This document shows, piece after piece, positions 18,798-47,224 of a stretch of DNA of 64,000 bases; positions within the stretch are counted from its first letter, which is position 1, and every line of letters starts with the position of its first letter. The notes under the pieces are model-generated. The model saw only the letters and a program-made list of their open reading frames with translations, made no database searches and was not told the origin of the DNA. The DNA comes from Entomortierella parvispora E1425 (lineage: Eukaryota > Fungi > Mortierellomycota): positions 1,984,001-2,048,000 of the forward strand of contig BQFW01000002.1 in the NCBI GenBank assembly GCA_020891255.1, in the 5' to 3' direction. The translations under genes and the position numbers were made by a program.

Positions 18798-18807
18798 TCA
18801 CGTGATA
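18798..18807. promoter_or_regulatory. Palindromic E-box ATCACGTGAT about 70-77 nt upstream of tRNA-Thr
   Basis: Exact 10-bp palindrome; the same motif occurs at a similar offset upstream of the other two tRNA genes. Confidence 0.5.
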
Positions 18808-18954
18808 GTGGTATAAATGTAAATATACTAAGCCACTATTCATGTCGTTTTTGGTAATCTCGTAAAGCCAAGACAGGAGAGCACGACCAGGGCAGACTTG
18901 CGGGAGACGAATACACGGAATGTCCCCTTCTAGTTTCCGGAACAAACAGGAGCA

Positions 18955-19860
18955 TCATGACCAGCGAGAAATAGTATCCCCCAAAGCAACCAATAAACCC
19001 TTACGGAGAGTGTCGGTCGAAAAAAAAAAAAAAAAAAAAAAAGTTGGCCTCATTGTGGACGCGTAGGCGGCGACCTTCTTCGCTTCTAGTTTTACTTGCA
19101 TTTCATCAAACACGCCCTTGCAGTTTGTAGTGATGCTCAAGACCCAAGCTATGCCCTCAATGATAGGTTCATCGAAATCTTCGAAATGAAAGTCTTCCAC
19201 GTCGTTACGAGAAAAACTGTTTTATCCAGAGTGGGGGGATAAGTCGAAGATGATTCTGACGTTTCTCTGCCAGTTGAGGTGTTATATGAGAGCTCTTTCT
19301 GCTCGTGAATCATTGGTTTTGCATCATGGAGCCCTGTCCATCAACTTTGGTATGATCCTCCGACGATGAAGTCTCCAGGTCGTCCTGCGATTTTCCAGAA
19401 GCGATTCTTTCATCAATGAAGCCTCTACGTCGTCCAACGATTCCATATCTAACCCTTCCGTCGGATGAAGCCTCTACGTCGTCCTACGAACTGTATCTGA
19501 TTCTGCCATGTATGAAACTTCTACGCCGTCTTTGGTGGAGGGCGATCTTGTGTTCTTTTGTAAAAAAAAAAAGCTGCATTCGTACATCGAGTCTGTTTCT
19601 TGAAGTGGATTTCCCTCATGATTCTGGGCTTGGACATAGAGTGAACCTTGGCTACGTAGTCCTTCCTTGAGCCAAAGGGATTGCATGTTGGTTTGCGTCT
19701 TTCTTTTTGATCGAGTTGTATTTCGCCAGAACAGGACTCCTTTTTTGGATTCTGCTCTGCTCCGTGTCTTTCTTCTGCAAAGCAACAAGCCCTGGGGATG
19801 CGCGGTTCATGTTGTTTAGGGTAGTCTGCACTGATAACTGATGAAGCCTCAACGTCGTCC
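18955..19860 (-). pseudogene. Possible decayed coding relic with repeated DDVEAS-encoding 20-mers
   Basis: Broken minus-strand frames with several stops and frameshifts; four copies of ATGAAGCCTCTACGTCGTCC-like sequence; no recognisable family. Confidence 0.3.
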
Positions 19861-20385
19861 TAAGTCGAGTGGACCTGGTTTTTGATTGAATCGTATTGTC
19901 CTTGAAATCATTCTTTCACGACGACACGCTCTATTTTAATGTGTGTCTCAGTCAACCTTTTGTCCTTGTGGCGACAGCGATAGAGGAAAAGTCCTAGTCG
20001 TAGCGGCATAGGTATCAACAGCGACAGCAATCCATAAGGCGGCGGCAGCCCTGGTGGCAGTCCCTTTTGTAGAAACCGCGACAGGGGGTGTTGACTGACG
20101 TGCTTTCTAGGCCCTAAGGCCCTTGTCGCCCTCTTTTCCACGGAATGATGCTGGTGATGAGGAAAACGATGGAGAGATGAGGAGCACAAGGGTTGACGGG
20201 TGTTGATGGTGGCTTACGGGCAATGGTGCGGAGCCCAATTTCCATTTAGATGGGTCGAGAACAAGATAATATTTATGGCAACTGGGGACCCCCAGATGTA
20301 GCGAGTTTCACGTTTCTTCTCGCTGGTTTGAGTCTATGGTACAACATCCGGAGAGTTTCTTTTTTATGTCTTTCAATATGGCTGT

Positions 20386-23300
20386 TTAGATATATCCCGA
20401 TGGCGAGTATCCTCCTTCATTCTTGCCATCGCCATTGCCTCTACCTCTCGTGCTTCCTGAATTGGCTTGACTGGAGCCACGATCTGCGCTTCTATCGCTG
20501 TGTTGATTCTGCTTATTCTCTCGACGTGAATAATCGGGCGAGTCAGCTCCTAGTAAAGGTGTAAAGGCAACACCGGCTCCATTCCTGGATGTTGGCTGCT
20601 GTGAAGGTGACGGGGAAGGTGGACTACCTCGAAGAAGAGGTGAAGAAGGAGAGCTATAGGTCGCGTGGCTGTTCCTGTATCCGTTAGATCGCCTTTGTTG
20701 ATCCCGTTCTTGTTCTAAGCGGCTCTCCTCCATGGCCCGTTGAAGCTCATCCTCCTCTCTAGAACGAGACATCACGGCAGGATCGTAGTAAATTGGTGGT
20801 GGAGGCGATAGGCTCTGCATAGGATACGAGTGTTGCTGCGCTCCATGGGACGCGCCGTGGACTACCTCCACTCCATATGGAGGAGGGGAATATGGACCAG
20901 CGCCATTGGGGTTACTGGTAACGGCCCTAGCACCACCGTAGGTATAAGTGCCGCCTCTCAGAGGCCCTGCTCCTGGTGGTTTCTGCACCATCATTCTACG
21001 CTGTCGTCTGTTATCGAGGCAGCGAGCACAGCAACAACTCCAGATGCAGCAAAGAAGAATCAGGCCAATCAAACAGCCCACTGGAATCACGATGGCCAAA
21101 TGGTTCCTGGCCCAGTTCAAGACCCCCTTGATACCACTGCTGTATTTGCAATCTCCCTGTGAACAAGCGCCTCCAAAGCCACAGGGTGTACCATCGATAA
21201 AATAGGTTCCAGGAACTTGCATGCACGACAGTGAGTTACCGGAAGGATCATTGCACAGCAGATCGCAGGAGCTTGAAGCCCCGCAAGCCTTTGTGACGCC
21301 TGCCTGATCCTGTTGCTGGCATTGCAAATCACGGGAGGTGCAGACACCATTGGCACACTGAAGGCCAGTGACGTTTCCGGTTCCTTTGCATGGCGTTTCG
21401 TTCTCCAGACGAACATCGGGTGGGCAAGTCGCATTGGTGCCTGTGCAAACCTCCTGAACATCGCACTCTGAGATGGCTTGCCGACAGACCTGGCCAGCGG
21501 GTCTCAGCTGGCAATTCAAACAACAGCCGTCGTTCAAGTCATCACAGACAGCCGTTCCCTTGAGTTTGCAAGTCGTGCCATCACAACATGGATCCTGCGC
21601 ACAGTCATCCGCAGAGCCGCAATCACATTCTTCTCCTGCTTCTTTGAGTCCGTTGCCGCAGATGTTAGGCTGAGTGCTTACAGTGGTTTTAGTTCCTGGG
21701 GGTTGAAGACATTGGCCAGATGCACTCTGGATGGTATCACATATAGCACTGATACTGCAAGGAGAAAAGACTTTGGTCGCGACCTGTTCTGATGGGTTCA
21801 TGATAAACTGAGCCCCTGCGTCGCAAGTTGTGGCCGAAAGTGGACAACATTGACCATTCGGGTTGGGACAGAGCTGGCTAGTACAGTCATGAATGGCTCC
21901 AAAACCATGTCCAATCTCGTGCGCTACCACCATCCACTCGTTTGGGGTCACAGAAGAGATTCCAGTCCCGGCTGTATACTGAAGACCGGATCCTTTTCCT
22001 TGCTCTGAGGTCTTCATTTGACAGAGAGTCTTTGTCCAGGCAATGCCCACAATCGCGCCCGAGTTACATTTGGTCATCAAGTGCCAAAGACCTGCACCGT
22101 CACTGCTCTTTCCATCCTGTCCTCGCCAGAAACTAAAGTCACTCAGACGTTTGTCAATCGTATAGGCAGCCGAGCACTCTTGGTTCCATTCCATGCCTTT
22201 AACAGGTGTTGTGGGGCAATCGCTGGAGGTAATGTTAAGCGATATCACTCCCAGCGCGACGTTAAAGGTGCTTTCGTAAATTCCCGATGCAGTGTTAAAG
22301 TCAGCAAAAATCTGCTTTCGAGCCAGTGCCGGGCCACCATAATTGCTGACATATGTGCAATCTGCAGCCACGCCCTAGATACAAGAACCGAATACATGTC
22401 AATATTCTAGCAATTTATAAAACGCTTTAAGTCTTTTCCTTTGGACTTACCATGTAGTTGACCAGGCGATCAACAGGGCAGCCTTGGGGGACAGGATTGG
22501 GTCCTGCGACCTTGACTGCGACCTGACGTTTTGACAAGGGCGCCTTCAACACATCGGACCAGGAGGAACTCAAGTCAAGGTTACCACCATATCCTGAGAC
22601 GGGCAAGGTCAACGTCCTGTTTGGTGGGTAGTAGTATTCGAATGCATCAGTGTTGAATGGCTCTTGATTGACCAGACTGTGAGTCCCACAGGACTGTTGT
22701 TGGCCTTGAGGTTTTCCTTGATCGTCGCTCCTCCGCTTTTTCAACATGGCAGGTGTATTGTAAAGATCAGAGTCGCGATAAATGACAAGGCTCGACTGTG
22801 ACGAAGAAAAAGAGGAGGGAGTTGCATCGTCCGATCGTTTTTGTACTCGATAGTGCTGTCCTGTGTTGACATGGTAAACGTCCTCGCCGACCATGAATGC
22901 GCCCCGAAGAACCAGCCCATTGTTGAGCCTGTGTTGTCCACAAAACAGAGAAAATGAGAGATGAAATTAAAATCAGTTGGTCACAAAGATTAACACTGAG
23001 CAGAAAAACAACAGCGGTTTCTTGTTTTACCTGTCGGCGCCGCGGTTGACCGGGTTATCATCGTGCTCGATCATCATCCGCGCCCAGCCTTGCACACCCT
23101 CTTCGTGGAACATATGTTCAATCGTCCGCTTTTCCATCCGCGAGGTCGTCATGGCTCGGTTCCATTTACGGTCTGAATGGTATTGATCCTGGATAACAAC
23201 TCCTCGAAAGGCTTTGATTTCTTCCAGGTCCACATCCTCTCCCAGATTTGCCTCGGGATGAATGAAGTCATGGTTGGGCTCCAGGTACAAGTGAAACGTG

Positions 23301-23673
23301 GTGTTGAAGGCTGAGAACGAAAGTCGAACGGTATCGTGCCTGGACACGCCGTCCTGTGCGGCAAGGGCCGGTTGAGTGTTGCTTCGCTTGACTAATTTTA
23401 GTGTCGTTGCATCCCTGGGAAGGACGTCATGCTGTAGATCCAGGATATGTTCAGACCGAGTAATGGTGGGCCAAGAGGACGAGTGGGCTAACAGAGAGCC
23501 GGTAGGGGTAGAGAGAAGTATGAGTATCAGCGATCAGTAAGCGGGCAGTCGATATGTTGCCATAGAACGTCGTGGTTGGGACGAGTACCTTGAACCGTGG
23601 CAGTCCAGGTTGAAGAGAGGGCGAGAATCGATAATAGAACAAAGGCCGCGGTGGCCCTTATTGATGTGACCAT
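20386..23673 (-). CDS. ADAM family (M12B) metalloprotease: signal peptide, prodomain, reprolysin, disintegrin, Cys-rich, TM, cytoplasmic tail; 4 exons
   Basis: Signal peptide MVTSIRATAAFVLLSILALS; zinc motif HEIGHGFGAIHD; Met-turn FIMNP; disintegrin CGNGLKEAGEECDCG..CRQAISECDVQEVCTG; TM AIVIPVGCLIGLILLCCIW. Confidence 0.95.
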
Positions 23674-25483
23674 TTGGACCTGTGGTGACCGAGGACTGAT
23701 CGCTACAATTGGAGAGTTGGCTTAATCAGAGAAGGGGGAAAAAAGAAAAATCGGGATGGATGGATGGTAGGGAGACAGAGAGAAAGAGAGGGAGAGAGAC
23801 AAGGAGTATAGGGAGATGGAGAGAAACAAAGACAAGAACAGGGGCGTCGCAGGCTTTGCTCTGTGTTTGCTGGTGGAGTGGCGCTGTGTCTTGTGGGTGG
23901 GTGCTGGCGCTGTTGTGTTGCTGTTCCAGCTGGGTGTGCAGGTGAAAGAGTGCGCGAATGGGAGCAATGCAGCGAATGAATGAACGTATGACGACCGATG
24001 CAGCTGATGCAAGAAGACCCAAGGGACGATGAGAACGAAGAAGGAATAAAGAGAGAGCAAGGCGAGAAGAGAAAGAAAGAAAGAGAGAGAGCAGACCCCG
24101 GCGGTTCCTTTTTCCTGTTCTCGTTCTTCTGCCCCTGTCCCTGGAAATAGAAGCGAGACCAACCTGGGCTTTTGGCCATTTTTTTTTTTTTTTTTTTTGG
24201 GATAGCACGCCTGCTGTCGCCGACTCGCTCCCTTGGACTGTCTATGACTCTATGTCTCGCCCTGTCGTGTCTCGAGTCTATCGCAGCTTTACCCGGGTCA
24301 CTCTCTTTCTCACTCCCGTTCGCTTGTATATCCTGCCATTGATACCGAGAGACCAGCTGGCCGTTGTTGACACACGGTTTCACACTTTGTCTCTAGATTG
24401 TCACAGTGTCGTCCTAGAGCCTCAGCACAGCCTCATCCTCATCTGCGTCTTTGGGATTGGGGGAGAAGACGAAAATAGGGGTGGCGCACCTGCCCGCCTG
24501 CCTTTCCACTTGCGCCAGAGACAACAAACATATCATGCTGTCATGTCGACCACGACGGTCGTCAAGTGCAGTCGATCAGAACAAGACACCTTGTTCTCTG
24601 TGTCTTTACGAAATAGCAACAACAATAACGACAACAGCCCTGGCTGGGTTCAATTGCGATTACGTCGTCTGCGATGAGAACAGATATTCTTCTCAAAGGT
24701 TCATCGGTAACAGTTATAAGCACCAGTTGGGGAGCTGCGTTATTTCCTAGACGACGCGTCCCGTGCCACTTTCTTTTCTTTTTGCTACGCAGCGGACGCA
24801 ACATGGAAAGTGGGGGGGGGGGGCTCTTGTCTGCTTCGCTGCCCTAATACAGCGACGGGCAATGACCCTGTTTGATCAGGGTTCGTTTAGCTCCGCTGGA
24901 GCATTTCACCGCATCGTCCAGTACAAAGCAGGAACACTTGACTTCTTACGAGAAAGACATATGCCGGGGCCAGACCTCATTGCAATGTCCTCGCCCAGAC
25001 TTTTTTCCTTGCGAAGCGAAAAATTTCACCGTTGGTCAGTCAAAGACAGAAAGAGTGGGAGCCTTGGGGATTTCTGCTCGGATTGTTCCTGACGTTCTTG
25101 CTGTTCGACGTAATTAAATTCCAAAACAGGTTACCATCTGCTGGGGACGCATCATGGCGATATCATCGCTTTGGATTCCACCTTGAGCGGACTTGGCAAG
25201 CAGAAGGTCAAGCAGGAAAGAGTCTCTCCGTTGCAACCGTCTTCTTTCAACTCATCTCTTTCCTCATTTCCTTCTCTTTCGCCTCATTCCTCACCTTTTT
25301 TTTTTTTTTTTTTGTCCATTCACTTGCGTTCTTGATAATTGTTCCGAGCCCACTGTCACTCGACATACCACGCGCCTAGAATTTCCTTATTGTTGCACTG
25401 CATCTCTTCCTTTCGTTAGTCTGCCTTTCCCTGCCTTTTGTTCTTTCCTTGCATCTTCAACCTCAGCACAATTCACTCTATCC

Positions 25484-27457
25484 ATGCCAACGTTATTGCA
25501 AGGATGGGCCGTGCCTACTCTGGCGGTGATCTCAGCCCTAGCAACCCTCATCTATCTCTCCCTCTTCAGCGAGCTCTATACCCTCAACAACGATGAAACG
25601 ATACGAAGACCTCATGACACAAATATCCACCACGACTACAAGCAGCCTCTATCACAACAGCAACAAGAGACAAAGAACCAACTGTTGACCACCACCACGA
25701 CTGTGCCCCAAGCCCAACTAACACCCACCAGCAGTCAGAATGATAATAACTACAAAGTTGCTCAACTCCATATCAACGCTTTTGTCTCATTCTGCAACAC
25801 ACCTACGACCAACTCTCCTCCTCTCGGCCCGGCCTTGTCCTCTTCAGCCCCAGAGCTCCACCAGACTGGGTTTTCATCGTACAGTGAGTGGATTGACTTT
25901 ACCAACAAAAAGAATTCCAAGAGCAATCGCGACGCCCAGCAATTTACCGAGGAATCAGTTGTTCGCCCTCTGTTTTTTGAACGTCCACCTCCCAAGTGGA
26001 TAGTAAATCTCACAGCCCTGGAGGAGCCTTGCGACCGCCTTATTCACACCTCAGCTCACTGCCTTGATGCTCTCTCCAAAGAGCATCAATATCTGGTTCC
26101 CTCTGTCGCTCCCTCAATCAAAAACTCGATCTCGTCGGTGCCTGAAAAGGAGGGCGAAACTCCAGTGAAGGACGACACGATAGACTTCCATGTCTTTTGG
26201 CGGGGTCCAATAACCGATAAACTGTCGCAGAATGCCCATGCGTTCTTGTTCACCCAGCCACTCAAACGAGCTCGGTTACATCTCTGGATCGACTCTGCAG
26301 ACCTCCCAGGCGGTGTCCCTGAAGACTATCTCCAGAACGAGTTTGCAGCACCTCTTGTTCAAGAGCCTTTAAGTCGATACATCACTATCCATGCATGGGA
26401 TCAGGCTGCTGAGCTCGCATATTCCTATGGAGATGGGGCTACTGAAGAGTCGCCAGAGAACGACAGTGATCGTGATAACGGTATCGAAGACAGCAACAAC
26501 AAAGACCAGCAGGGCCCTGCACCAAATTTCAGTAATGTGAAACCGGTCGCACTCTCGGATGAGGCTCGGTTCCTGATTCTAAATAGAAACGGGGGTATCT
26601 ACCTAGATGCAGATGTTATGCTGTTGAGAGACATGTCGCCCTTCTATGATTCCGGGGTGGAATTTGCCTACGAATGGAGCAACACTCGTATGTACAACAC
26701 TGCTATCCTGAGACTTTTTCCCGGATCTTCGGTTGCGAGAAGGATCTTGGATGGTGCCAAGGCCAGAGAGATCGAGATCATGGAGAAGAAACGATTACAG
26801 GCTCTCGCACAGAAGTCGGATCAGGCGGCGGTACTCAAATCAGACAGTTACAAAACGGCCTTTATCCAAACAAAGAAACCAAATGCTAGACCTCGACCCA
26901 TCAGTGCCAGCAACCAGTCAGGAACGACAGCGAGTCATCGGAAAGCACAGGCACTGTCCAAGCGAGGGGAGATGCGACCAGATGAGATCTATCACCCTGC
27001 TCGCCTGCGCAAGTACCTTCGACCTGAGGATGAAAAAATTGAAGGCAATGGATTGATCATGATGCCACCAGCCTTTTTTGACCCACTGTGGCTCCGCGTT
27101 GACCGTAAAGAGACCAAAAACACTGGCGACACTGACAAGATGATGGAGGACCTTTTCACATTCCCAGACGCATTCTCAGCCAGTGCGAACGCTGTTTGTC
27201 CTGCAGCGGTGCCTGTTAACCTTGGTGTCAGCACCAGTGATAATGACACGACTCTGAACAACAACACAAACGATCGCATCAAAGACTTCACGGCTGGCCC
27301 GGAGGTTTTCTTCATGGGTGCCTACGCTTACCACTGGCATAACAACTGGCTCACGCCTATTGAACCCCAGAGTTGGATGGGTCAGATGCGACAGGCCTTT
27401 GACGACTTTGTAGCGGGACGGCGACCGAACCTCTATGGCGAATGGTTCGGTATGTAA
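25484..27457 (+). CDS. Type II membrane glycosyltransferase, GT32/DXD sugar-binding family, apparently single exon
   Basis: N-terminal anchor WAVPTLAVISALATLIYLSLF; FHVFWRG; SDEARFLILNRNGGIYLDADVMLLRD (DXD); YAYHWHNNW. The upstream part of ORF 25193.. is low-complexity, so Met at 25484 was chosen as start. Confidence 0.85.
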   Translation: MPTLLQGWAVPTLAVISALATLIYLSLFSELYTLNNDETIRRPHDTNIHHDYKQPLSQQQQETKNQLLTTTTTVPQAQLTPTSSQNDNNYKVAQLHINAFVSFCNTPTTNSPPLGPALSSSAPELHQTGFSSYSEWIDFTNKKNSKSNRDAQQFTEESVVRPLFFERPPPKWIVNLTALEEPCDRLIHTSAHCLDALSKEHQYLVPSVAPSIKNSISSVPEKEGETPVKDDTIDFHVFWRGPITDKLSQNAHAFLFTQPLKRARLHLWIDSADLPGGVPEDYLQNEFAAPLVQEPLSRYITIHAWDQAAELAYSYGDGATEESPENDSDRDNGIEDSNNKDQQGPAPNFSNVKPVALSDEARFLILNRNGGIYLDADVMLLRDMSPFYDSGVEFAYEWSNTRMYNTAILRLFPGSSVARRILDGAKAREIEIMEKKRLQALAQKSDQAAVLKSDSYKTAFIQTKKPNARPRPISASNQSGTTASHRKAQALSKRGEMRPDEIYHPARLRKYLRPEDEKIEGNGLIMMPPAFFDPLWLRVDRKETKNTGDTDKMMEDLFTFPDAFSASANAVCPAAVPVNLGVSTSDNDTTLNNNTNDRIKDFTAGPEVFFMGAYAYHWHNNWLTPIEPQSWMGQMRQAFDDFVAGRRPNLYGEWFGM

Positions 27458-28415
27458 AACGTAAAAAAAAAGTTGCTTTTAATAAAAAGCCACTTCTATT
27501 TTTATTTTTTAATTTTATTCGAATAAAATACCAGGGCGCGTGTGAAGCGCGACATGCATGCTTCGCAATAGGTGCAAAGACGAGGGATTGATGGGCAGAG
27601 GGTAAGCATCAGTAGCGACGAATGGAGACAGGCACAGGGACAGAGACGAGAGTGGAGGGAGGGCGATCAGCAATGAGAGCAAGGCGGACTGCGGTAGGAA
27701 TTGCATGTAAGGAAGTGCAAGCGACCACCATGCGCCTTCCCCATTCCATGGCATGCGTTCATCCATGCCACACCTGGCACCCGCATGCATGCATGCACAT
27801 CCATCCTCGACGTGTCCTTTCTCGCTCCTTTCTCCCTCGAGAGAAAACAAAACAAAAGAAAGAAAAAAAAATCGCCCCCGCTCAGTCTTTGAATCTTCTT
27901 TGCTCAGTCGTCGGGAATATCCTTCCTTCTCGCCCATCCTCTTCTCTCTTCCTTTTCTTTTTCTTTTATCCCCTTTCCCTCTCACATCCATCCATCCGTC
28001 CCGTTCTATCATCCCATCTTTACGTTCTTTCTCCCTTTTTCTCTCTTTTCTTCATTCAATCTTTCTTTCTTTTTTTTTTTTCCATCCCTACGCACGCACG
28101 CACGCACACGCAGCTCTAGACCTTCATCCCTCTCCTCCGTCTCCGTCTCTCCTCTGCCCTTGAATCCATCCATCGCCGAACGTTATCGACATCGGATCCT
28201 CATTCTCCCTGCCTCCTTTTGCATCCAACCCCTCCCCCTTTTCTCCTGGGAATCGCACGCTCCATCGTCATTGACTATCCCCAGCCTATCCCATCTGTCC
28301 ACACGGCCGATCACAGCGTGTCTTCTAATCCATCGCGGCCCCCGTCTGCGCTTTTGTTAAACAGCTCACTTTTCCTTTTGGCACACGTAGCAGACACCAC
28401 AGACAGTCGTCCTTC

Positions 28416-31031
28416 ATGACCGGGGACTCTGACGACGGCACCCCGCGCCCAAGCTCGACCAGGGTGCACTCCACAAGGTAAACAGAGGGACCTTATTGCC
28501 CCCGATTCAACGGCGACGTATCTTTCTTCCTTCTACGCCGGGGATCCAACCAAACATCTCTTTCTGCTGAGCTTGTGCACGCGCGCCAACCTAGCATTCA
28601 CTGTCCTCCTATGCTGTCGAATAACCCAGAGCAACAAGACTAACAACTCTTCTGTGCAAAACATTCCTCTCGGGGGTTGTTGTTTTTACTCCCTTGATTC
28701 TCTCCAGGGACCAGACGGGAACGATCCGTGCGAGGACTAGAACGGGAGAATCGACCACGGCAACAAAAACAACAGAGGACCCAACAAAGACAACCACATC
28801 GTCCCTTTCTGCTTCGCTATCAGTTTTGCCATCTGCCGTCTCATCCACGTCCCTTTCAGATCAAGAAGTGCTCGAGCACTCCACAACACCGACAGACGGA
28901 GCAACATTGGCGGTGCATAACATGTCCTTGGCAGGATCTCCCACCGCTGCGCCATCCCGATCCACCACAGGCGTCCGAGGACCCATCGGGCCTCGACCAG
29001 GCGTATATCGACCCTGTGCTCGGTGTCGTAACAAAAAGACGAGATGTGATCGGTTAAAGCCATCATGTTCCAACTGCAAAAAGAATGGCCCGGACACTGT
29101 TTGCGTTTATGACAACGATGAGCCAACCGCGGGCGTTGTGACTGTGACGACTGCAGAAAGCGGGACGGACCAAGGCATGGGCTCTGCAGATGAAGATGGA
29201 CCACCTTTCCCGGACAGCAGCAGGTCAACGTCGTCATCATCTGTCAGCTCTTCGGCAACGGCAGGGTCAACTGCAACAACGGCCACGGTATTAGCATCAA
29301 AAACAGATGGGAGTAGTACGCCTGTTGAGGGAGCAGGATCTGGAAATGGAGCTGCTGTTAAGATCGCTGCACGGCCTAGCCCTACGCCTGTCACTCCCAC
29401 CAATGGAGGGGGCTCCTATGTCCGAAAACACGGATCGCCACTGCCAGAATGGGCCACCAAAAAGAACATCCCAGAAGAAGACCCCTCATCACAGCCGCCT
29501 CCCGCAAAGAAGTCTAAGCAAGGATCAAGTGTAAAAGGGACTACAAAGCCAAGCCCACTGCGTAGCTCCATCACCAACATCAACAGCAACACTCCACAAT
29601 CCGAGCAGTCACCATCTGCGGATGCAAAGGCCAAGAGCTCTTCTAGAAAAGAAACCTCACAGCCTGGCTCTGATGATTACATTGATATTGACTCGACAGA
29701 TGTCCCCGAAGGTTTGTGAAAAAACCCAGAAAACATCGGTGCTTTTTGCTCAATCACAGGTTTAGTTTTCATTTGGGATTCTCAGCCTTTTTTCTTGGCC
29801 CGTTTTAGACAAGGTGGTTACTGAGCTATCAGTAGCAAAGAGGAAAACATCGGTTGCAGAGGATCAGTTGCCACAACCGCCAGTCAGTAAAAGTCATCAC
29901 AAGAAGCATACCAAAGCGTCCTCAGGAGCCCTTTCCAACGGTGGCACGGGTCCCATGTCAGCATTTGGGTCGTCCAGGATCATGGTGGATCTGCCAACAG
30001 CGAGACCCCCGCCACCGTTTGTGATTGATGTGAACCAGCATGCTCGCAAATGGGGAAAATCAAAAACAATAGTCCTGACTCTAGGCGGTGAGATTTCTTT
30101 GCCACTTTGGACCTCAGGTATAAAAGACTAGCGAACATGAAGACTGTATGTATTCAGGATACCAGAAGAACAAAACAATTAACACCCCATTTCTATAGAT
30201 CAAGAGATGTTATTGAACGAACCACGTCCGTTTTATATGCAGAATGCATCCCTGTTCTCGACAGGATCTGGAGCAACAAATCTGGCGCGGATGGCTGCTT
30301 TTAATCAGATGGACTACTACAACCTTAGTAGCAATAACACTCCCGAGCGTGGAAATACCCCCGAAAGCGGTGAGCACTCCCCTTCCGGACCCACAGCATC
30401 CTCAGCCACAGCAGTCAACCCAGCGACGGGCAAATCTCATAAAAAGAAAAAGAGATCCTTGGATCACCCACCTGGATCACGGAGATCAAGGGAGGAAGGC
30501 TCTGAAGTGGTCCTTTCTGCCAAACGGAAACATGGGGCGGAACGGGGCTACGATGGCGATGATGCTGATCTGTCAAGTTCCCGGTCCACACCCACGCCAT
30601 CGGTCGTCTCTGTGGCGCCAACTCCAAAACCGAGAGCGATCCCGACTAGACCCCGAACTTTTCCTTGTTCGTTTGAAGGCTGTGGCAAATCATTCATGGA
30701 CAAATTTCATCTTCGTCGGCATGAGACCCGCCATGTGACTCAGGAAATTACCTGCGGAATCGATGGATGCACCAAAGCGTACGACTCTATTAGTACAATG
30801 AGGCGACACCAAAGTATGATTCATAAGAACAGGAAAAAGGAAGAGCTCTCTTCGTCATTGCTAAGCTCCACCAAAGTCCATGGCAATCATGGATCGTCAT
30901 CAGCAGGAGCAGCAACCCCGACCTCAATCTCAGCAACGAATGCTGGACAGGAGGAAGAGAACGAAGATGATGACGATGAAAGACTGGGATCCGTCACAGG
31001 ACAGACCATTATGGAAGAGATCGAGGTCTGA
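28416..31031 (+). CDS. Transcription factor with Zn(II)2Cys6 cluster, REPO/2W-hairpin-like motif and two C2H2 fingers; exons 28416-28477, 28708-29711, 29809-30117, 30199-31031
   Basis: CARCRNKKTRCDRLKPSCSNCKKNGPDTVC; RKWGKSKTIVLTLGGEISLPLWTS|DQE; CSFEGCGKSFMDKFHLRRHETRH and CGIDGCTKAYDSISTMRRHQSMIH. All three GT-AG introns are phase-consistent. Confidence 0.88.
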
Positions 31032-37146: not shown

Positions 37147-37178
<32 letters not shown>

Positions 37179-37337
37179 GGGTCATTCTCAGTTGACCATA
37201 CCTCAATGGTAATTCTAGGGTTGATTTCCAAAAGAAGACATGCCCATTAGCTACTCCAGAAAACTTCTAGCAGAGCTCCGTGAGGCGACTGTTGATTTCT
37301 CTTACATTTCCTTTGCATGTGTCTCCTTTTCCGCCAT
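34597..37337 (-). CDS. TDP1: Tyrosyl-DNA phosphodiesterase 1, many exons; 5' exons approximate
   Basis: First catalytic motif [40 protein letters not shown], second motif RAMPHIK, AWG..SYELGVL and C-terminal [10 protein letters not shown]. Confidence 0.93.
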
Positions 37338-37432
37338 GAGGCTGAGTTGGGTTGAATGTGAAGAAGTGCGAAAGAAAAAAAAGGGCGGCAGAACGCTTTA
37401 AATACAAAGGACAGTCACTAAGCGTCCGAACT

Positions 37433-39333
37433 CTACATCATCATTTTATTGTAGTCGCGCTGGTCCTGCTGCATCTTCTCCACTACTCTGCGCTTCTTCT
37501 CGTAAAACTGCACGAGATCTAGATCCTGCTCTGGATCAACAACATCAGACGCTTCAGTTAGACGAGCCATAGCCTGCCACAGCATACCTCCCATGCCCGC
37601 GTCTGGTCCTTTAGCCTTGGATTCATAAGCGACTGCACCACAGATAGCTGCGCCTACGACAACAGCTGCGTCGCCCCCGCTTCCAGGCATTACCACGGGC
37701 AGTTGCATCACGTCTGCAAGAACTCTGACAAACACCTTATTGAGTGACAATCCTCCAGATATACAAATCGTCTCAATAGTGTAGCCCGAGTTGCAGAGTG
37801 CATCAACGATCTGACGAGTCCCTATTGCCAATGCCTGGATTGCCGCCAAATAGAGTACTGCCAGACCATCCACATTGTCGTTGTTGAGATCCAGTCCAGA
37901 AATTGAGCCTCTAATCGTTTCATCTGCGAAGGGCGATCTGTTACCGTGGTGGTCGGGTGTCATGTGAAAGCGCTTTGTAAGATAGGCGATGTTGGGTAAT
38001 TTTTGCCTGGTACGAATGGTTTCCAGGTGTTCATTGAGAAACTCGTAGATGGAGGTCTTAGGTATCAAACTCTGAGCTCTCTTCAGAGCCTCAGAGTAGG
38101 CTGGATGAGACTTTGTGAGATAGTCGATGAGTTGACCAGTCGACGATTGCCCTCCTTCTGCGACCCACATGTCAGGAAGCATCACGCCGTGAAAAGGTCC
38201 CCAAACCCCTAATAGGAATAAACAATGCGCGTCAAAGAACATGGTCCAATTTCTGTTTGTGACGCATGGCGCGTTCATTGTTCACACCCTGTCATGGTCA
38301 AGAATCAACCACGACTACAAGACATACCGTTGACAAAGATCGGTTTGTTGCTCATGGCAAGATGGCAGGATGATGTACCGCAAATCATAGATATTCTCTT
38401 ACTAGCCTCATCCACTGTTGGTTGCACCCCGTTCAACTTTGCGCCTAGGGTGCCAATAGCCCCTGCGTAAGCATCAATGACTGCACCGCCTACGGCGATC
38501 CCCGGTACAAGACCAAGCTCCTCTGCGGCCTTCTCTGTAAGTCCTCCGATGTGTTCTCCTGCAAAGTGAACACGTTGTTCCGAGTTGCCAATGCCACAAA
38601 GCTTTTGACAATCCTCATCTGCAATTTCACCGAGCCCAATCTGACGCAAAAAATCAGCGGGCCAGCCCTGCTTCCGATCCTTGGAGCCATCGCGTCCATC
38701 GGCCAAAGATTCCGGCCCCGCCTTGTAGCACCACTTGCACACGACTGAGCATCGACTGGGATAGTAATCGCCAGTGGCCTTCCAGGTCAGGAAATCGGGC
38801 AGATCAAAGAGTCGACCGATTTTCTGCCACTTTTCCTTTGGCATATTCTCCTGAAGCCAAAGCGTTTTAGGCAGCTCCATCTCGAGACTCATTGTCCCGC
38901 CAATATTTCTGAGGATCTCGTGGCGCGTCTCTGTGATGCGAATGGCCTGGTCCTTGGCGCGGTGGTCGCACCACATGATAATATTGCGGTTATGATCTTC
39001 AAAATCTGAGCTTGGCGAGATGGAGACTGGGCGCGCAAACTCGGGCGTGCCGCTTGTGTATGCGACCAAGGAGCAAGTGGCATCAAACCCGATACCTTTG
39101 ACCGAGCCTGGGTCGACACGTGCAGTGGCAAGGGTCGCCTTAACGGAGGTGCAGATGGCTGACCAAATCTCATCGCTAGACTGCTCGAAGTAATCAGGAG
39201 CGGGACGCGATGTCGAGTGTGGGGTGGAGTGGATGGCGAGCAGTTTTCCGGTGGCGGTAATGAGGGCAGCTCTGCTTGATCCCGAGCCGACATCGACACC
39301 GAGGAAGATGTCCGCAGCAGAGAGAGAGTCCAT
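37433..39333 (-). CDS. FGGY-family carbohydrate kinase (ribulokinase-like); one intron ~38322-38210
   Basis: LGVDVGSGSSRA, GIGFDATCSLV, IIMWCDHRA, DLPDFLTWKATG, ICGTSSCH, GVWGPF, EGGQSSTG, PDHHGNRSP and ISGGLSLN. Confidence 0.95.
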
Positions 39334-39657
39334 GCTGAGGATGACCGAGGAGAAGGGGCAGGAAGATAAAAGGGGGAATAAGGGAAGACACGCGTGGGAG
39401 AGAACAGAGAGACAGAGCGAGAAACTGACGTCCCCGTGCCAGAAAAATGGCAACCGTGTTTCTTTCTCTTCTCCTTTCGTTGCCCCTTGCATTCATTCTC
39501 TCTTCTCTCGCCCTCCAACTGCTTTGCGCTTCCCCTCCAACAACCCCTGGCAGGGCCGTTTGCTCTCTCCACCTCGGACAGGAAAAGCATTTCAGCCTCA
39601 TTGGCGCACAACAACAGAACACTTTGTCACATCCACACCGAGCTCCAATTTTGCAGA

Positions 39658-42600
39658 ATGGCGGACAATCCCACACAGGATTCCATCACCATGGCCCAGT
39701 TGAGGCAGTACGTAAACGGAATGCCCTCCAAGCAAAAGGTTTGCACGACGCTGCAAGGTTGCTGTATGGTGCCACTGTGGGAAATCAAGCTATACCGTCT
39801 CTGACCCTCACTGCCCATACTCTGCTCTGCTATGTCAATACATGTAGCAAGAACCTGTCCATTTTCAATATGCAGATATGGACACGGTCCCAGCCGAGAT
39901 TGATGAATTTTACAGCTACACAGAGATGCAGCAGCTTGTTGAGAATCGACAAATTGTTCTCAAAAGTTACGATGGAGGTAATGCGCGAATCATGGATCAA
40001 AGCAAGCTTAAAAAGATCCACGTCGTTCTCTAACATCTCTGATACGGCGCCTAGACTGGCAGAACAGTACAGTATCTGAACGCAAAGCCTATGCCGAGTA
40101 TCTTTTGGATTTTTTGGATCAGAAGAGCGAAGCCAGCCGTCTTTCTGGAGCTCGACAGCTCATATATATTGCTCAAGGTATGCTCGATTTGGCATCTTAC
40201 AAAAGTTGATGTTCAGCGTATCCTGATCGGCGAATTCCACTTTGTGTCCTTTAGGAGCTTTTGCGACTGTAGCAAACGAAGACGAACATCTGGACTGGAT
40301 TGTGAAAAACAACAAGATGCTTCGAAAACTTGGGGCGTTTCAAACATATTATGACGCTCTGAGGATCGCATGCTCAAAGTAATTGAACAGAAAAAAACCG
40401 ATAAGCGTAAGCATGCATGATGCCTATATCGCCAGAGCTGTAACGATTGACAACTCTCTCTCTTTGTGCTGTAGACTGCCGACAGATCCAGGAGCTGCCA
40501 CAGAGATTGAGGCCCTCGTCACACTTCTCTATATGCTCGTTATTTCACATGAGGATGATCAGGATTTCATGGATGAGCTAGGTAAGTGGCAACCCGTCTT
40601 TGGATGATCTGCGGCCCAAATTTAGTGAAAACGCTGACTGTTACTTTTAAACAATGGTATTTAGCTGCCACAAACCCCTCCTTAACCGTATTTCTGTACG
40701 ATCAGATCTGTGTCCGCCCAGCAAAGGATCAGTTTTGTCTTTTAAAGAAGGTACTACTAGATATTCGTAGAGCCTCGTCTACATCATCTTGATTTTTTGC
40801 TTTTCTCACATTAACCTGTGCTTCTCATGAAAAACATAGATGCTATTATTGCTATGGAAAGTTATGAGAACAACTTTAGGGGGAACGGATGACTTTCCAG
40901 TTCTTAAAAGTATAGCAAGACGAATGCTTGGGGACCCTTCAAAAACTATTGCCGCCATCAGTCAAAAATCCGACCCTTTGGACTATCATGTTTACCAGTC
41001 CGAGATGAGCCAAAAATATCCAGCTTATATACCCACGAACTCTTCCACCAGCCCTGGATTTCCTTCCGTTGCCATCTCGACCATGGCTACTGTCTTGCAG
41101 GCCAAACCCTCGACGACCTCTGGGATCGCAGGAAGTAATGGCGGTCAAGGAGGAACGTCAGGAAATGGAATGAAGTTTGGAAATGGATTGAATGGACGGG
41201 GTGGCAAGGGATCGAATGCAGGACCCGGCAATCTGAATTCTGGATTGCAGCCTTTCATCTTTCCATCATCTTCTATGGAAAGCTCAACTCCAAAGTCAAT
41301 CATCGAGGCGGAGGAACTATTCAAAAAGAACATGTATATATCAACCGCAACACTACAGATCTTTCATGAGAAGAAGATGATGACCGACATGAGATATCGC
41401 TCCAATGACGATGCTGAGGATCAAAACTCCGGAAGGGCTTTAGAACATCGGCAGCCAAAGTCAATGAAATCCAACCGAACTCGTCCACGGAGAAGGGGCT
41501 TGCGACGACGTGTCAGTGGTGGCGGAAATGGCAATCAAGGCGACGATGAAGCGGACAGTGGAGGGGACGATGATGATAGTGAAGGCTCCGGAGCAGAGCA
41601 GACTGATCCCAAAGGAAGCTTGGGCCCATCAAGCGAGACTAGCCCTGTTACAGAGAAAGAACGGGAGCGGATCGAACGCATTGAGCATATCTATGTAAGT
41701 ACTCCTGGCAAATGGAGGGGGAAAAAAGTCCTCTTCTAACATCCCCTGTATGTTTTTTTCTAGCGTGGAATCGTTCCAAGAATGGCGCAAATCCAGGTCA
41801 CTCTCTTAAAAACTCTCCTCGTCTGCATCAAAATCAGCGGTGCTACGACAGCAAAGGAAAACGCCGCTGCAGCTAAAGATACTGCTTCTTCAGAGACAAC
41901 GGCCGCATCCGAAGTTAAAGAGGTCGTCGACCCTTTCACTCGCCTCAATGACATTCGAGAGCACGAGATCATGGCCAAGGCCGTGGCCAGCATTCTCCTA
42001 CTACAGCTGCAACATTTCAAGATTTACCACGTGTTGGCATTTGACTATGTTTGCCAGCTTCTCCTGGACTCGAACTGTCTGCTACTTCTTTTGAAGATTT
42101 TTGGAAATAACGAGAATCCAGGCAACATCCACACCAAGAACGAACTGGAAGAGTACAACTTTTTCCAATTTTGCCGAATCTTCCGAGAGACTGAGTCCAG
42201 CCCTGACCCCGAGCACGCCCGGTCCTTGATCCTTCAAAATGCAGTCGGGGATATCGGGGATCCATTGCCAGCAGAGTACATCTGTCGTCGAAACATGTTT
42301 GCCATCATCAACCTCTTACGGGTGCTGCAAAAGATGACGAAGCACAAGACGCATCGAGTCCTGCTTCTAGTGCAATACAAATCATCTGCGATCCTCAAGC
42401 GACTTTTGAAAATCAATCACCCAGATCTCCAAAAGTACGTCTACAAGGCCCTCAAGAGTCAGGTTCCGTTCTTGGGACGAAAATGGAGGTCTACCCACAT
42501 GAAAGTAATTACCGGCATCTATATCTATTGTCGGTCAAATCTGAGGGACGACTGGATCTCGGGTGCCGATGTCGAGAAAGATTTAGAGGATGCTCTGCCG

Positions 42601-43659
42601 ACAGAACAGCAATTGAGAAATATGATTCGGCACTACCATGACCGAGTACACCCGAACGCGTTAGTCCCTGATCCAGTCTCGTCCCAGCAAGCCAAATCAG
42701 CTAATGGAAGAAATGGCCAGCATGCCGGCGGCCACAGCTCGACCAGCGGTAGCACGAATCAGTATTCTGGACCCAAATACGATTGGCAGGAAATGTATGA
42801 AGCCCATGCGTCAATTGCAGAAGTTGGGGGAATGGACCAGTCTCGTGGTTATCATCGTCACGGAACTCACGGGAGTGGCCACAGTAGCGCAGCACAGTCT
42901 GATAGTGAGGAGAGTGTCAGGAGCACCACCAGCAGTCAGCACAGTCATTACAGCAGCAGCAGCAACCGCCGTGATCTGACAATGAGTGACATCGAGCTTG
43001 ATGCCGGCTTTGAAGAAAATTATGAGCAGTGGCTTGAGACCGAAGTTTTTGGCAAAACGATGGCGGAGGATGGTGATGTCGGGGTAGGGTCAACCAGGAC
43101 TTTGCCGCCTTTCAGATACAATGACTTTTATTTTGACGACCACACCGAGGAGTCGTTCCAAAACACGCTAGGCGATGGAGCAGGGTGGGATACTCCTGCC
43201 TTCATGCCCTCGGATGAAGAAGGTGGAGGTGCGTTTAACTTTAGAAGATTGCAGGACGAGGAGCTCTTCAAACAGATTAATTGGACGCCCAATTTGCATA
43301 GCAATGATGCATCTGTTGAGCAAAGCTATTGGCTCGAGGGTGTCTCGGGCGATCGCACTAGGAATCGAGTGTTGCACTTGGATGGAAATGGTCATCCCTA
43401 TCAAGACGGTGGCGGCGATATACAGGAGGAGCTGGAGGACGATGATGATGCCGATGAGGAGGATGGTCGTCCAGTGGCCGTCGATGCCGACTCGGGGATC
43501 GATCTGCTTCACCAACCACGCGTCCGTCAATCAAGACCGTTCAGAGTGCGCAAATCTGATATGGGCACAGAATGGGTGGACGAGAACTCAAAGGAAGATG
43601 TTCTTCGTGCGTATGGACCATCTCCGCTGGAGTCTGTTGGAGGCATGGTTGAGCTGTAG
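39658..43659 (+). CDS. FAR11: STRIPAK subunit Far11/STRIP1 (N1221 and DUF3402 regions), multi-exon
   Basis: DSITMAQLRQYV, AEIDEFYSY, KKVLLLLWK, REHEIMAKAVASILLLQLQHFKIYHVL, LVQYKSSAILKR, ALKSQVPFLGRKWR and FEENYEQWLETEVF. Confidence 0.92.
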
Positions 43660-43897
43660 CAATTTATGATTTCACTCGTATGCTCATAAAGAAAAAAAAA
43701 AAAATCTTGTCGAAGAGTCCCTCGCAGGTGCGGGGTTTATTGTCTGTTAATTACACATACGCAGGTGCGAAAAAAAAAAAAAAATTCTTGACGCATGGTG
43801 CCCTTTTTTTTTTTTTTTATTGCAACTTTGATCTTTCTACCCGAGCCACACGAGGGTCTTGTTTGTCATACATCCCCTTCACACTGCAACCAGAGTA

Positions 43898-44293
43898 CAG
43901 TGCACGTCAGCTAGTCACAACAAAAAATCTTTGACCTGAGGGTAAATCTCTACTAGTCCGCCAGTTTTATCCGGAATCCAAAAAACTCTGTGGTTTTGAA
44001 CGTTTCACAGCTCATCCTTTCAGAAAGCACAGAGTTTTTTCCTCTGGGATACCTGTGGCCAAAGTTATTAATGTTGGTCAATCGAGAATTTGGCTATTCG
44101 AGGTATAGAATACCGAATATATTTATTCGAGTATATTTTAAAAATTATTAGCGATATGTCTTACGCATCCCCAGTGCGACCTAGAGCTGAGATGAGGCAA
44201 CGCAGTCACATTTATTCCAGAAAACTTACAATTTTTTTGAGATCAAAATTTGGCGTGCCCTCAAAAATTGTTGTGACTAGCTGACGTGCACTG
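43898..44293. mobile_element. Tc1/mariner-type MITE, 396 bp
   Basis: Perfect 26-bp terminal inverted repeats CAGTGCACGTCAGCTAGTCACAACAA, flanked by TA on both sides (43896-97 and 44294-95); AT-rich non-coding interior. Confidence 0.9.
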
Positions 44294-44856
44294 TAGTACA
44301 TATGGCGTGGTCAGCTGAATCGAGTCTCCCGTCCGCCCGTACTACACACGTCCCTATGCGACCAGTTGGCAGACTCGTCGCCTGCTAATAAGATCGAGAC
44401 CTCCTCGCAATAACCGCCTTCCACCGCCTGGAACACCTTGCCTGCTTGCTGGACGGCCTCGGAGGGGGCCTCGGTGTATCCTCAGAAAATTTCTTGTTTA
44501 TTGTCCGACTGTTGGTGTCCGACCGCTTTCACATAGAACATGATCCTGCATATGGCCGACAGCTGTTTTTAGTGGGCTGGACCACCTCGTATACTTAGCA
44601 CTTTAACTCAGTGCCTCCTGGTAACTAATCCACATGGGATAAATATCAGCAAGTGCTGTAGGTAGTGATACAAACTATTGTACCGCCTCTAACTCGAGAG
44701 GCTAGCGCAAACGAGGGCGCACCAAGCTGAGATCGAACCCTCGACCTCACGGCACTGTCTCTGGAAGCTTTATTTACTAGGCGCTTTAGACGCAGTAGCA
44801 AAAGGGCTCGCCCGCCTTGACGCATGGTGCCCACTTCTGACTTAAGGGTCAAATTC

Positions 44857-44866
44857 ATCACGTGAT
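44857..44866. promoter_or_regulatory. Palindromic E-box ATCACGTGAT about 60-67 nt upstream of tRNAi-Met
   Basis: Exact 10-bp palindrome at a conserved offset from the tRNA start. Confidence 0.5.
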
Positions 44867-44924
44867 CCCGGAGATACGGTTGAATCATAATCGACAACTG
44901 AAAATTACTAATATCTCGAAATCA

Positions 44925-44996
44925 AGCAAAGTCGCCCAGAGGAAGAGCGCTGGGCTCATAACCCAGAGGTCGGTGGATCGAAACCACCCTTTGCTA
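44925..44996 (+). tRNA. Initiator tRNA-Met(CAT)
   Basis: A1:U72 pair, anticodon arm CTGGG-CTCATAA-CCCAG with three G-C pairs, initiator-type T-loop GATCGAAAC, followed by TTTT. Confidence 0.93.
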
Positions 44997-45427
44997 CATA
45001 TTTTGCTTTTGTTTTATTTTGCTCATCGAAAACGAAGAATTGACATCTTCCAACAGACGTTTTTTTTTTTTTTCTCTTGGCCACCGACACTTCCATACCC
45101 GCCTGCCGACCAGCAACAGAAGCATGCCCGCGATCTTATACCTCTGCCTGACCTACACCCTACCACCAGTCGGTGGGTAAGTGTAGGAAAAAAACCCCCG
45201 ACATTTTAGAGAGAACCAGGTGGCCAATGGTTGGCGATTAGAGTGTACTAGGATCGTTGGTAAAAGACCCGGGAAGGAAGATCACCGCCTGGTAAGTGGG
45301 AAGACTCTTCAACATTCAATCTATTCGTTAACCCAGGTCAACATGTCTCTTTTGTTCTTGATTCTGGACCGGTCGATATAGGATGGCAAGGCATGGGGTG
45401 TATCCAGAGAGGAGGGCAGGGAATGCG

Positions 45428-45770
45428 TTCACGTGGCTGGTTAAGGAATGGCTAAGTAATGGCTAAGCAAAATGCAAAAACGAAGAACGCGATGCTTCGG
45501 AATCTCCACATTCACGTGGCTGGCTAACGAATGGCTACAGTAAGTAACGGCTAAGCAAAATGCAAAAACGAAGAACGCGATGCTTCGGAATCTTCATATT
45601 CACGTGGCTGGCTAACGAATGGCTAACGAATGGCTAAGTAATGGAAGGATCGGCTAAGCAAAATGCAAAAACGAAGAACGTGATGCTTCGGTATCTCCAC
45701 ATTCACGTGGCTGGCTAACGAATGGCTAAGTAACGGCTAAGCAAAATGCAAAAACAAAGAACGCGATGCA
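45428..45770. repeat. Minisatellite: about 4 units of 83-103 bp with nested GGCTAA(CGAAT) subrepeats
   Basis: Units start at 45428, 45511, 45599 and 45702 with TTCACGTGGCTGG and contain GGCTAAGCAAAATGCAAAAAC(G/A)AAGAACG(C/T)GATGC. Confidence 0.95.
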
Positions 45771-46143
45771 TCTGTAACTCAGTTGCCACGTGTACTGTAC
45801 ATGCCGCCGGCAAATAACACCTTCCCTCCTCCTTAGTATCAAATACTCTCAACCCTCAACCTTTCGGTTCACCCGACTAGGTACTTGTCACCGCCTAACT
45901 TCTGGTCCCACCCCCACCTCTCACCCCTTCTGTTTCCCTCTACTCCAAGTATGTTCTCACTTTGGAGACACCTGCCCGTTCTCTCGTTGTTTCCCTTTCT
46001 GACATCGTTCCTGCTATGCATACCTTAAGACTGCCAAGATGCCCCTCCATCCACACTCTCACGTCGCTCTTCCCCATCGCTCTTCCCCATCGCTTTTTTC
46101 TTACTCTCCCCTGTCCAGTTGAGTTCATGTCGTTCAAATCAAC

Positions 46144-46451
46144 AGCGAATATCGGGAGAAAAAAAAAAAAAAAAAGAATCTACCGTTGACCATGCTGGTT
46201 TTCCTCCCCACCGATTATCTCCCTCTTCTGCCGCTCCCCTCTTTCTTCAGTTCCAGATCTACTTGCACCACAAAGCGGGGCGTATAAAACCTACACGGAA
46301 TAGGACTGTATCTTCCTCCGACAGTCTTTGGCTACGGTCAACTATGTGTCGCCCCTTGTGATCCTTCCTGATCGAGAATGGGCACATCAATATTGTCCAC
46401 GGGAGACTTTTGACCGAGTACTGTAGAACAAAAAAAAAAAAAACAATTATC
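46144..46451. repeat. Dispersed ~300-bp repeat, copy B
   Basis: Aligns with 18272-18564. Confidence 0.9.
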
Positions 46452-46528
46452 CTTCCTGTTCGCCAACCTTGTCCCTCATCCGTCGACCACCCCGTTTCTT
46501 GACCACCGACACTTCCGTAACCGCCTAG

Positions 46529-46869
46529 TTGTGAAATTTTAGGAGGGTTCAAACTTACCAAAAGATGCATTCTCAGAAGTGAAAAGTAGATACTGTGGAT
46601 CCTATACCAATGTGTCTAGCCATATCTACCTTGTACCTTAGCCAACTGAGTCACTGAAACTTCTGCCGTTGGTGACCGGCTGCTCGAAAGGACAGCGGTT
46701 GGTGAGAAAGACACCGATCTAGTTTTTTTTGTTGACATGAACAAAGGGAGACATTGCTTATTGCTAGACACATTGGTATAAGATCCATAGTATCTACTTT
46801 TCACAAGTTCAGGAGAGAGTAATTACTTCGCAACTTTTGGTAAGTTTGAACCCCCCCAAAATTTCACAA
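46529..46869. mobile_element. Fold-back/MITE-like element with long imperfect inverted arms (46529-46620 and 46763-46869)
   Basis: Two aligned blocks of 36 nt and 42 nt, each with 2 mismatches; no target-site duplication identified. Confidence 0.65.
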
Positions 46870-47047
46870 GTCGGTGGTTTAGAGAGGCGTCGGTGATAAT
46901 GGTCGGCGGACACGAGATGTCAAGATCGACGGATAGGACGCCCAAAAGGAAAGTCCCCCATGGTCGGCGGAAAACTAACCAACGACTGAGTTCTTCTGGG
47001 CACATCAATATTGTCTACGGGTTGAACGACAAAACAAAAAGTCAAAA

Positions 47048-47121
47048 TGTTTGTACTCGGACTTGAACCGAGGACCGTCTGTGTGTTAGACAGACGTGAT
47101 AACCAACTACACCATACAAAC
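47048..47121 (-). tRNA. tRNA-Val(AAC)
   Basis: GTTTGTA/TACAAAC acceptor stem, A-box TGGTGTAGTTGG, anticodon arm TCTGT-CTAACAC-ACAGA, T-loop GGTTCAAGTCC, followed by TTTT. Confidence 0.97.
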
Positions 47122-47177
47122 TTGTAATTCGATGCAGATGAGATTCGCATGTCATATTTGTTTTAGAAGTTCAGAAT

Positions 47178-47224
47178 ATCACGTGAGACTCGACCACGTG
47201 ACCACGTGACCATATGATCACGTG
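47178..47224. promoter_or_regulatory. Cluster of four CACGTG E-boxes upstream of tRNA-Val; the nearest is ATCACGTGAG at about -58 to -65
   Basis: atcacgtgagactcgaccacgtgaccacgtgaccatatgatcacgtg. Confidence 0.5.

Follow-up and report, generated by a model that had tools for sequence, protein, structure and literature searches.

In the textbook account, fungal transfer RNA (tRNA) genes are transcribed from A and B boxes inside the gene, and any upstream help comes from a TATA-like element alone. In a 64-kb window of the Entomortierella parvispora E1425 genome (contig BQFW01000002.1, positions 1,984,001 to 2,048,000), all tRNA genes are preceded by a palindromic E-box, RTCACGTGAY, and the same element recurs before tRNA genes across this genome and in related fungi, within a confined upstream zone, with conserved flanks and independently of homology in the surrounding DNA. 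We propose, with a probability of roughly 0.6, that RTCACGTGAY is maintained by selection as an external cis-element of genes transcribed by RNA polymerase III (Pol III), through which a predicted dimer of the Cbf1/USF/TFE class of basic helix-loop-helix (bHLH) proteins would aid Pol III.

E-boxes upstream of tRNA genes in the window and the genome

ARAGORN detected three tRNA genes in the window, in agreement with Rfam: tRNA-Thr(AGT) at 18658-18729 on the reverse strand (RF00005, 70 bits), an initiator-type tRNA-Met(CAT), hereafter tRNA-iMet, at 44925-44997 on the forward strand, which carries the initiator-type GATCGAAAC, and tRNA-Val(AAC) at 47048-47121 on the reverse strand. The intragenic A and B boxes of all three are canonical according to both programs, as in type-2 Pol III genes. 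The octamer TCACGTGA, which the initial annotation had noticed upstream of each of these genes and nowhere else in the window, was returned exactly three times by an exact search (18798-18805, 44858-44865 and 47179-47186), every copy lying upstream of a tRNA gene and starting at -76 (Thr), -67 (iMet) and -65 (Val) from the mature tRNA 5' end. The last two copies lie where they had been annotated; the first had been placed one nucleotide off, at 18799-18806. Before tRNA-Thr and tRNA-iMet the octamer is part of the E-box ATCACGTGAT (18797-18806 and 44857-44866), and before tRNA-Val it opens a cluster of four E-boxes (47179-47224), in which the three extra CACGTG copies that had been reported were recovered at 47195, 47203 and 47219. 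The hexamers of this cluster start at -64, -79, -87 and -103. The number of octamers in the window is unremarkable (3 seen and 0.95 expected, with three or more in 7 of 100 shuffles). Their placement, however, is unusual: zones of 61 nt before the three genes amount to 0.29% of the window, and simple arithmetic gives a chance of about 2 × 10^-8 that all three octamers would fall there.

The remaining CACGTG copies in the window comprise four scattered ones and five in or near a tandem repeat at 45428-45769. This array, which starts 430 nt downstream of tRNA-iMet, consists of about 3.8 copies of 88-103 bp units with one TTCACGTGGC each; four of its hexamers lie inside the array and the fifth (45787) 18 nt past its end.

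Using the Rfam tRNA model, we located 59 nuclear tRNA genes in the genome. We then defined a local sample consisting of the window and 29 stretches of 10 kb around genes of this set (labelled L with a number, as are contigs of relatives), amounting to 354 kb with 46 tRNA genes; the sample is biased by tRNA family, being rich in Ile-AAT and Thr-AGT. Within the 130 nt upstream of the 46 genes, TCACGTGA was present at 20 and CACGTG at 23, and these upstream intervals, 1.7% of the DNA, account for 27 of the sample's 30 octamers. All 45 CACGTG hexamers found up to 300 nt upstream of the sampled tRNA genes are centred between -51 and -111, with a mode at -61 to -80, and none was found in the sample at -300 to -112 or at -50 to -1. 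Genes with the element have between one and four copies, variably placed within this zone.

The association extends to the whole genome. The octamer followed at 95-125 nt by the B-box pattern GGTTCRANNC gave 81 matches, compared with 1 in the reversed control, and at 126-156 nt it gave 46, compared with 2 in the control. Octamer and B box therefore stand at the proper distance 127 times, as opposed to 3 in the controls, which corresponds to about 101 tRNA genes after de-duplication. Because this B-box pattern catches only 35 of the 46 sampled tRNA genes, the total is probably higher than about 101. Nearly every tRNA family is represented among the octamer carriers retrieved in this way. On contigs C1-C4 a hand tally was used because the genome-wide A-box/B-box pattern was noisy (328 matches and 208 in the control), and here the exact octamer stood in range at 30 of 51 recognisable tRNA genes (59%). 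Altogether the genome contains 635 copies of TCACGTGA, about a fifth of which sit in the tRNA upstream zone, a few hundredths of a percent of the genome. The genome-wide positional enrichment that the initial annotation had proposed to look for is thus evident. Its octamer at every tRNA gene holds within the window only, since genome-wide roughly 45-60% of tRNA genes carry the exact sequence.

Half-site flanks, a second motif and related fungi

A T lies directly 5' of CAC in 83% of 82 tRNA-linked half-sites, compared with 29% of 70 half-sites elsewhere, and a purine precedes that T in 78% of the tRNA-linked set. This flank preference is confined to CACGTG copies linked to tRNA genes, where the element is therefore RTCACGTGAY: a palindromic class-B E-box core bordered by T and a purine, bearing out the earlier assignment to a Cbf1/USF-type site. 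RTCACGTGAY is the textbook site of Cbf1 (the CDEI element, RTCACRTG), USF and MiT/TFE-type dimers with a bHLH-leucine zipper (bHLH-Zip). A T next to CACGTG disfavours Myc-Max; the C or G that flanks Myc-type sites is replaced here by T/A, and to our knowledge fungi have no Myc. At least 23 loci in the genome encode a helix-loop-helix (HLH) domain.

Divergently transcribed tRNA genes share their boxes. The Lys/Ile pair (L004) has two shared boxes, at -105/-75 and -94/-64, and the His/Thr pair (L018) likewise two, at -81/-69 and -79/-67. Such symmetric sharing would fit a palindromic site read by a dimer, and, as a palindrome, the site should be usable in either orientation. The spacing between boxes is not fixed, ranging from 8 to 37 nt. 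E-boxes of the ATCACGTGAT type also follow the 3' end of a tRNA by about 25-33 nt at L007:4867-4874 and L043:2612-2619, the former adjoining a long T run.

A k-mer scan of the tRNA upstream regions returned CACGTGA and CCCTTAA as the top words. TTAAGGG, counted in either orientation, occurs at 19 of the 46 sampled tRNA genes, and 28 of the 31 copies found up to 200 nt upstream lie at -60 to -112, in the E-box zone; the exceptions, at -10, -121 and -183, include two that belong to a divergent partner gene. The E-box alone is present at 18 of the 46 genes, TTAAGGG alone at 14, both at 5 and neither at 9. The extended motif, MTTAAGGGTNTA, is asymmetric and occurs mostly at tRNA genes without an E-box, and its flanks are conserved at 24 unique tRNA-linked sites and not at 13 sites elsewhere. 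Sites of this kind were recorded in L015, L016, L019-L023, L025 and L026 and in the window at 44841-44849, where CTTAAGGGT on the forward strand, with its TTAAGGG core starting at -83, accompanies the E-box at 44857-44866, so that tRNA-iMet has both motif types. Genome-wide, the motif before a B box gave 18 + 10 matches, compared with 5 + 2 in the controls, and represents a minor class; the bias of the 354-kb sample towards Ile-AAT and Thr-AGT over-represents it locally. We also considered a telomere-type Tbf1 site or telo-box (TTAGGG/CCCTAA) for MTTAAGGGTNTA and rejected it, as the motif has an extra A.

In order to follow the element into related fungi, we used the genes around the tRNAs, searching with the proteins of single open reading frames rather than spliced models. 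A Far11/STRIP gene (N1221 + DUF3402) lies at 40840-43659 in the window, and its best named relatives are in the Mortierellaceae, with 61-65% identity in most genera and 54-58% in the most distant; there the neighbouring genes are kept and the adjacent tRNAs are not. In E. beljakovae, Far11 is followed by a tRNA-iMet whose 73 nt are identical to those of the window gene. Nothing else aligns, and the sole TCACGTGA of this 18.6-kb contig is found at -81 of that tRNA. A closer relative, represented by a soil contig with 90% protein identity, has no tRNA beside Far11, and orthology of the two tRNA-iMet genes is for this reason likely rather than certain. When synteny was traced through the Far11, MFS and PXA-protein neighbours in named relatives, the tRNA was kept only in E. 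beljakovae. The eight other syntenic loci are without a tRNA, which shows that tRNA positions turn over fast between genera, and these eight tRNA-free loci (about 137 kb) contain no TCACGTGA.

Fourteen contigs were retrieved from soil metagenomes by a scan with the 5' portion of tRNA-Val(AAC). Twelve of their tRNA-Val genes had sufficient upstream DNA, and five of these have one to four CACGTG in the zone, while another three, mutually related, have TCATGTGA near -58. Upstream of tRNA-Val lie 13 of the 15 CACGTG copies in 42 kb of these contigs. One contig with four boxes (L047) encodes a transporter 71% identical to that of Actinomortierella ambigua and 42% to that of Entomortierella, and the element therefore extends beyond Entomortierella. 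Judging from these sequences, the best explanation is that the element belongs to the Pol III genes of Entomortierella and of other Mortierellaceae.

A candidate upstream activator and its alternatives

The 46 sampled tRNA genes show a TATA-like peak at -56 to -33 from the mature end (strict pattern in 17 of 46), exemplified in the window by GATATAAG before tRNA-Thr (18772-18779, reverse strand, about -43 to -50 as read from the sequence). The yeast TFIIIB footprint covers 10-40 bp upstream of the start site, and the mature end follows about 13 bp after that site (PMC5052057). With a similar geometry in this fungus, the proximal edge of the E-box zone would abut the upstream edge of TFIIIB. 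The earlier suggestion of a site just beyond TFIIIB thus stands as regards a fixed zone upstream of the expected TFIIIB site, the position of the footprint itself being an assumption taken from yeast.

We propose that a class-B bHLH(-Zip) dimer of the class of Cbf1, USF and TFE, presumably one of the HLH proteins counted above, binds beside TFIIIB and aids Pol III in one or both of two ways, by excluding nucleosomes from the TFIIIB site and by contacting or stabilizing TFIIIB, in the manner of nucleosome-displacing factors at yeast Pol II promoters and of Myc, via Brf1, in animals. The internal A and B boxes are intact, and the proximal edge of the zone lies directly upstream of the TATA-like element at about -45. 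MTTAAGGGTNTA, which a minority of tRNA genes carry in this zone, would presumably serve another factor with the same job. A wider proposal, which we advance tentatively and at somewhat less than even odds, is that the Mortierellaceae run most of their Pol III genes, those for tRNAs and RNase MRP RNA and perhaps others, via sequence-specific upstream activators, with a Cbf1/TFE-like bHLH protein as the main one and a MTTAAGGGTNTA-binding factor as the alternative, so wiring tRNA supply to nutrients and growth.

Several points weigh against the proposed role of the E-box. Most of the 635 octamers in the genome are found away from tRNA genes, at a density close to that expected by chance, with window shuffles extrapolating to about 580 per genome. 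The exact octamer is missing at about 40-55% of tRNA genes and the element is therefore not obligatory; the Lys-CTT genes at L005-L007, for example, have no octamer despite a tRNA sequence that is the same as that of carriers. The distance given between the E-box and TFIIIB presumes a yeast-like geometry. In addition, CACGTG is also the G-box of some basic leucine zipper (bZIP) proteins, so the protein that reads it need not be a bHLH.

Could the E-box be a non-functional by-product, copied with the flanks of duplicated tRNA genes or left behind as a scar by tRNA-targeting transposons? Transposons do crowd the DNA upstream of tRNAs, and some tRNA genes are recent duplicates that share their flanks (three copies in L021, the pair L005/L006, and L004). 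However, when the upstream regions of the 46 genes were clustered (thresholds of 65-80% were used, 60% identity having merged everything), they formed 38 clusters at ≥65% identity, 21 of which carry the E-box, and their median pairwise identity of 0.51 is at the random level. The E-box is also kept in soil relatives and in E. beljakovae, where the flank is unalignable. Both duplication and transposon scars are disfavoured by these results, to the point that we find a by-product scarcely credible. It is also very improbable that the E-boxes are Pol II promoters of divergent neighbours or of non-coding transcripts, beside which the tRNA genes merely happen to be located. Such promoters would suit the many octamers away from tRNA genes and the tRNA-Val cluster, which is about 730 nt from a divergent open reading frame starting at 47953, but they would not be expected to place 45 of 45 hexamers at -51 to -111 with none on either side. 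Moreover, E-boxes occupy this zone both where another gene ends upstream of the tRNA, as Far11 does before tRNA-iMet in the window and in L031, and between two tRNA genes (L004 and L018), and the flank preference is found at tRNA-linked copies only.

Two further alternatives accept a bound factor and differ on its nature or its effect. The factor could act as a barrier to Pol II read-through, heterochromatin or transposons, with little direct effect on Pol III initiation. Cbf1 sites in yeast are a weak roadblock for Pol II and Pol delta, and TFIIIB, too, acts as a roadblock (PMC5052057), upstream repeats stop just outside the E-box zone (-114 to -156) or at about -20, and tRNA-iMet, which follows the Far11 open reading frame on the same strand at a distance of 1.27 kb, faces read-through from it. 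On the other hand, TFIIIB alone suffices as a roadblock in yeast (PMC5052057), so that an extra barrier is not obviously needed, and the tight abutment to the TATA/TFIIIB zone, together with the multiple copies, looks more promoter-proximal. A barrier with little effect on initiation is in our view unlikely, and barrier and activator roles are compatible rather than exclusive. Distinctly unlikely, too, is a reader outside the bHLH family, either a bZIP protein of the G-box type or a part of the Pol III machinery, be it a subunit or an extension, that is specific to this lineage. Palindromes built on ACGT are bound by bZIP proteins as well, and a dedicated factor would fit with the finding that copies with conserved flanks are almost exclusive to Pol III genes. 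Yet the full RTCACGTGAY is the classical Cbf1/CDEI, USF and TFE sequence, the CATGTGAY variants present at some genes fit RTCACRTG and make poor G-boxes, and HLH genes are plentiful. We retain a bHLH dimer that aids Pol III as the preferred reading.

Known systems, transposons and other Pol III genes

The finding is a further form of upstream control of Pol III genes, which is a known phenomenon. In vertebrate type-3 promoters and tRNA-Sec, upstream factor sites together with a TATA box (distal sequence element (DSE), proximal sequence element (PSE) and TATA) likewise drive or enhance Pol III, and enhancer-like sites bind ordinary Pol II-type factors (Oct-1 and Staf). Type-3 promoters have a single oriented PSE at a fixed position that is read by SNAPc and do not need internal boxes, whereas the element described here is palindromic, multi-copy and variably placed between -51 and -111, at genes that keep their A and B boxes. 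Cbf1 of Saccharomyces cerevisiae, a dimeric, chromatin-shaping protein of MET promoters, has an identical site consensus (CDEI, RTCACRTG), including the CATGTGAY variant, but in the literature searched we met no report that it recurs systematically at the tRNA genes of yeast. Nor did full-text searches return any account of an E-box at fungal tRNA genes, in keeping with the initial view of the element as undescribed.

At TATA-dependent tRNA promoters (Schizosaccharomyces pombe, Arabidopsis, silkworm and Drosophila; PMC11346459), an external element likewise modulates TFIIIB use at a type-2 gene, and this fungus shares with them a TATA-like peak near -45; here, however, an additional palindromic E-box lies farther upstream, in one to four copies within a 60-nt zone. 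A 2024 review of Pol III chromatin describes upstream motifs of TATA-like and composite kinds only, with Myc acting via TFIIIB, and lists no sequence-specific factor site of the E-box kind at tRNA genes (PMC11346459). Human c-Myc/Max also links a bHLH-Zip protein and CACGTG to Pol III activation and local chromatin opening, with Myc-Max E-boxes in the 5S ribosomal DNA spacer and near 7SL (PMC4482074). In that system the effect on tRNA genes comes from contact with TFIIIB (Brf1), without a conserved E-box per gene, and the 5S E-box is a single spacer site, whereas the flanks here are T/A, of the Cbf1/USF/TFE type. The Tbf1 and Cbf1 ribosomal protein regulon of Candida albicans (PMC2834713) resembles the present case in combining an E-box with a G-rich Myb-type site at genes of the translation apparatus, but it is a Pol II regulon, tRNA genes are unmentioned in that study, and the second motif here is TTAAGGG rather than TTAGGG.

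If the wider proposal is correct, tRNA supply in these fungi would be tied to a nutrient- or growth-responsive factor by DNA sites at individual genes, a fungal counterpart of Myc control of Pol III. A positioned site for a Pol II-type factor at about 100 tRNA genes would show enhancer-like control of Pol III across a fungal family. Identical tRNA copies with and without the E-box can be compared directly, which offers a handle on differences in their activity, and, as a practical matter, the element suggests better Pol III promoters for the expression of guide RNAs or suppressor tRNAs in oil-producing Mortierella species.

The way in which the many tRNA-targeting transposons of this genome are placed would likewise be explained by the E-box module. 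Repeated DNA upstream of tRNAs ends at -114 to -156 or, in one young family, at -17 to -22, so that the E-box zone is either left intact or replaced as a whole. If the module is real, these elements would respect it, by inserting at -114 or beyond, or mimic it, as an element ending near -20 and carrying TCATGTGATC together with a TATA-like box, both spaced as at native genes, would. Repeats ending at -114 to -156, just beyond the E-box zone, were found in L003, L004, L008, L011, L013-L015, L026 and L029. The young family is >5 kb long, with copies 98-99% identical to one another (L027:4994-10000; L029:2030-6160 and 7530-8138; L007:4996-8632; L003:5749-6358), and ends 17-22 nt before two tRNA-Met genes, a tRNA-Lys and a tRNA-His. 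Its terminal 110 nt contain TCATGTGATC at about -70 and GATAAAAG at about -44, a layout that in sequence mimics the native upstream region of tRNA genes.

The E-box may serve Pol III genes besides those for tRNAs. One of the three octamers outside the tRNA upstream intervals of the 354-kb sample, GTCACGTGAC at L007:4263-4270, lies 100 nt upstream of the RNase MRP RNA gene (Rfam, 91 bits; L007:4363-4697, on contig C8 at about 1242660-1243094), which is probably another Pol III gene; as a single gene, it also counts among the weaker points of the proposal. The 5S rRNA genes are arranged in tandem arrays of about 1.4 kb at C5:1897018-1898542, C11:8329-9882, C16:121949-123495 and C18:55693-57245, of which those on C11 and C5 lie, respectively, at a contig end and 12 kb away from one. 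A sequence of about 63 nt with a chance match to the B box, probably a subtelomeric repeat, recurs near contig ends at C1:9060, C2:305, C3:12693 and C2:3988392.

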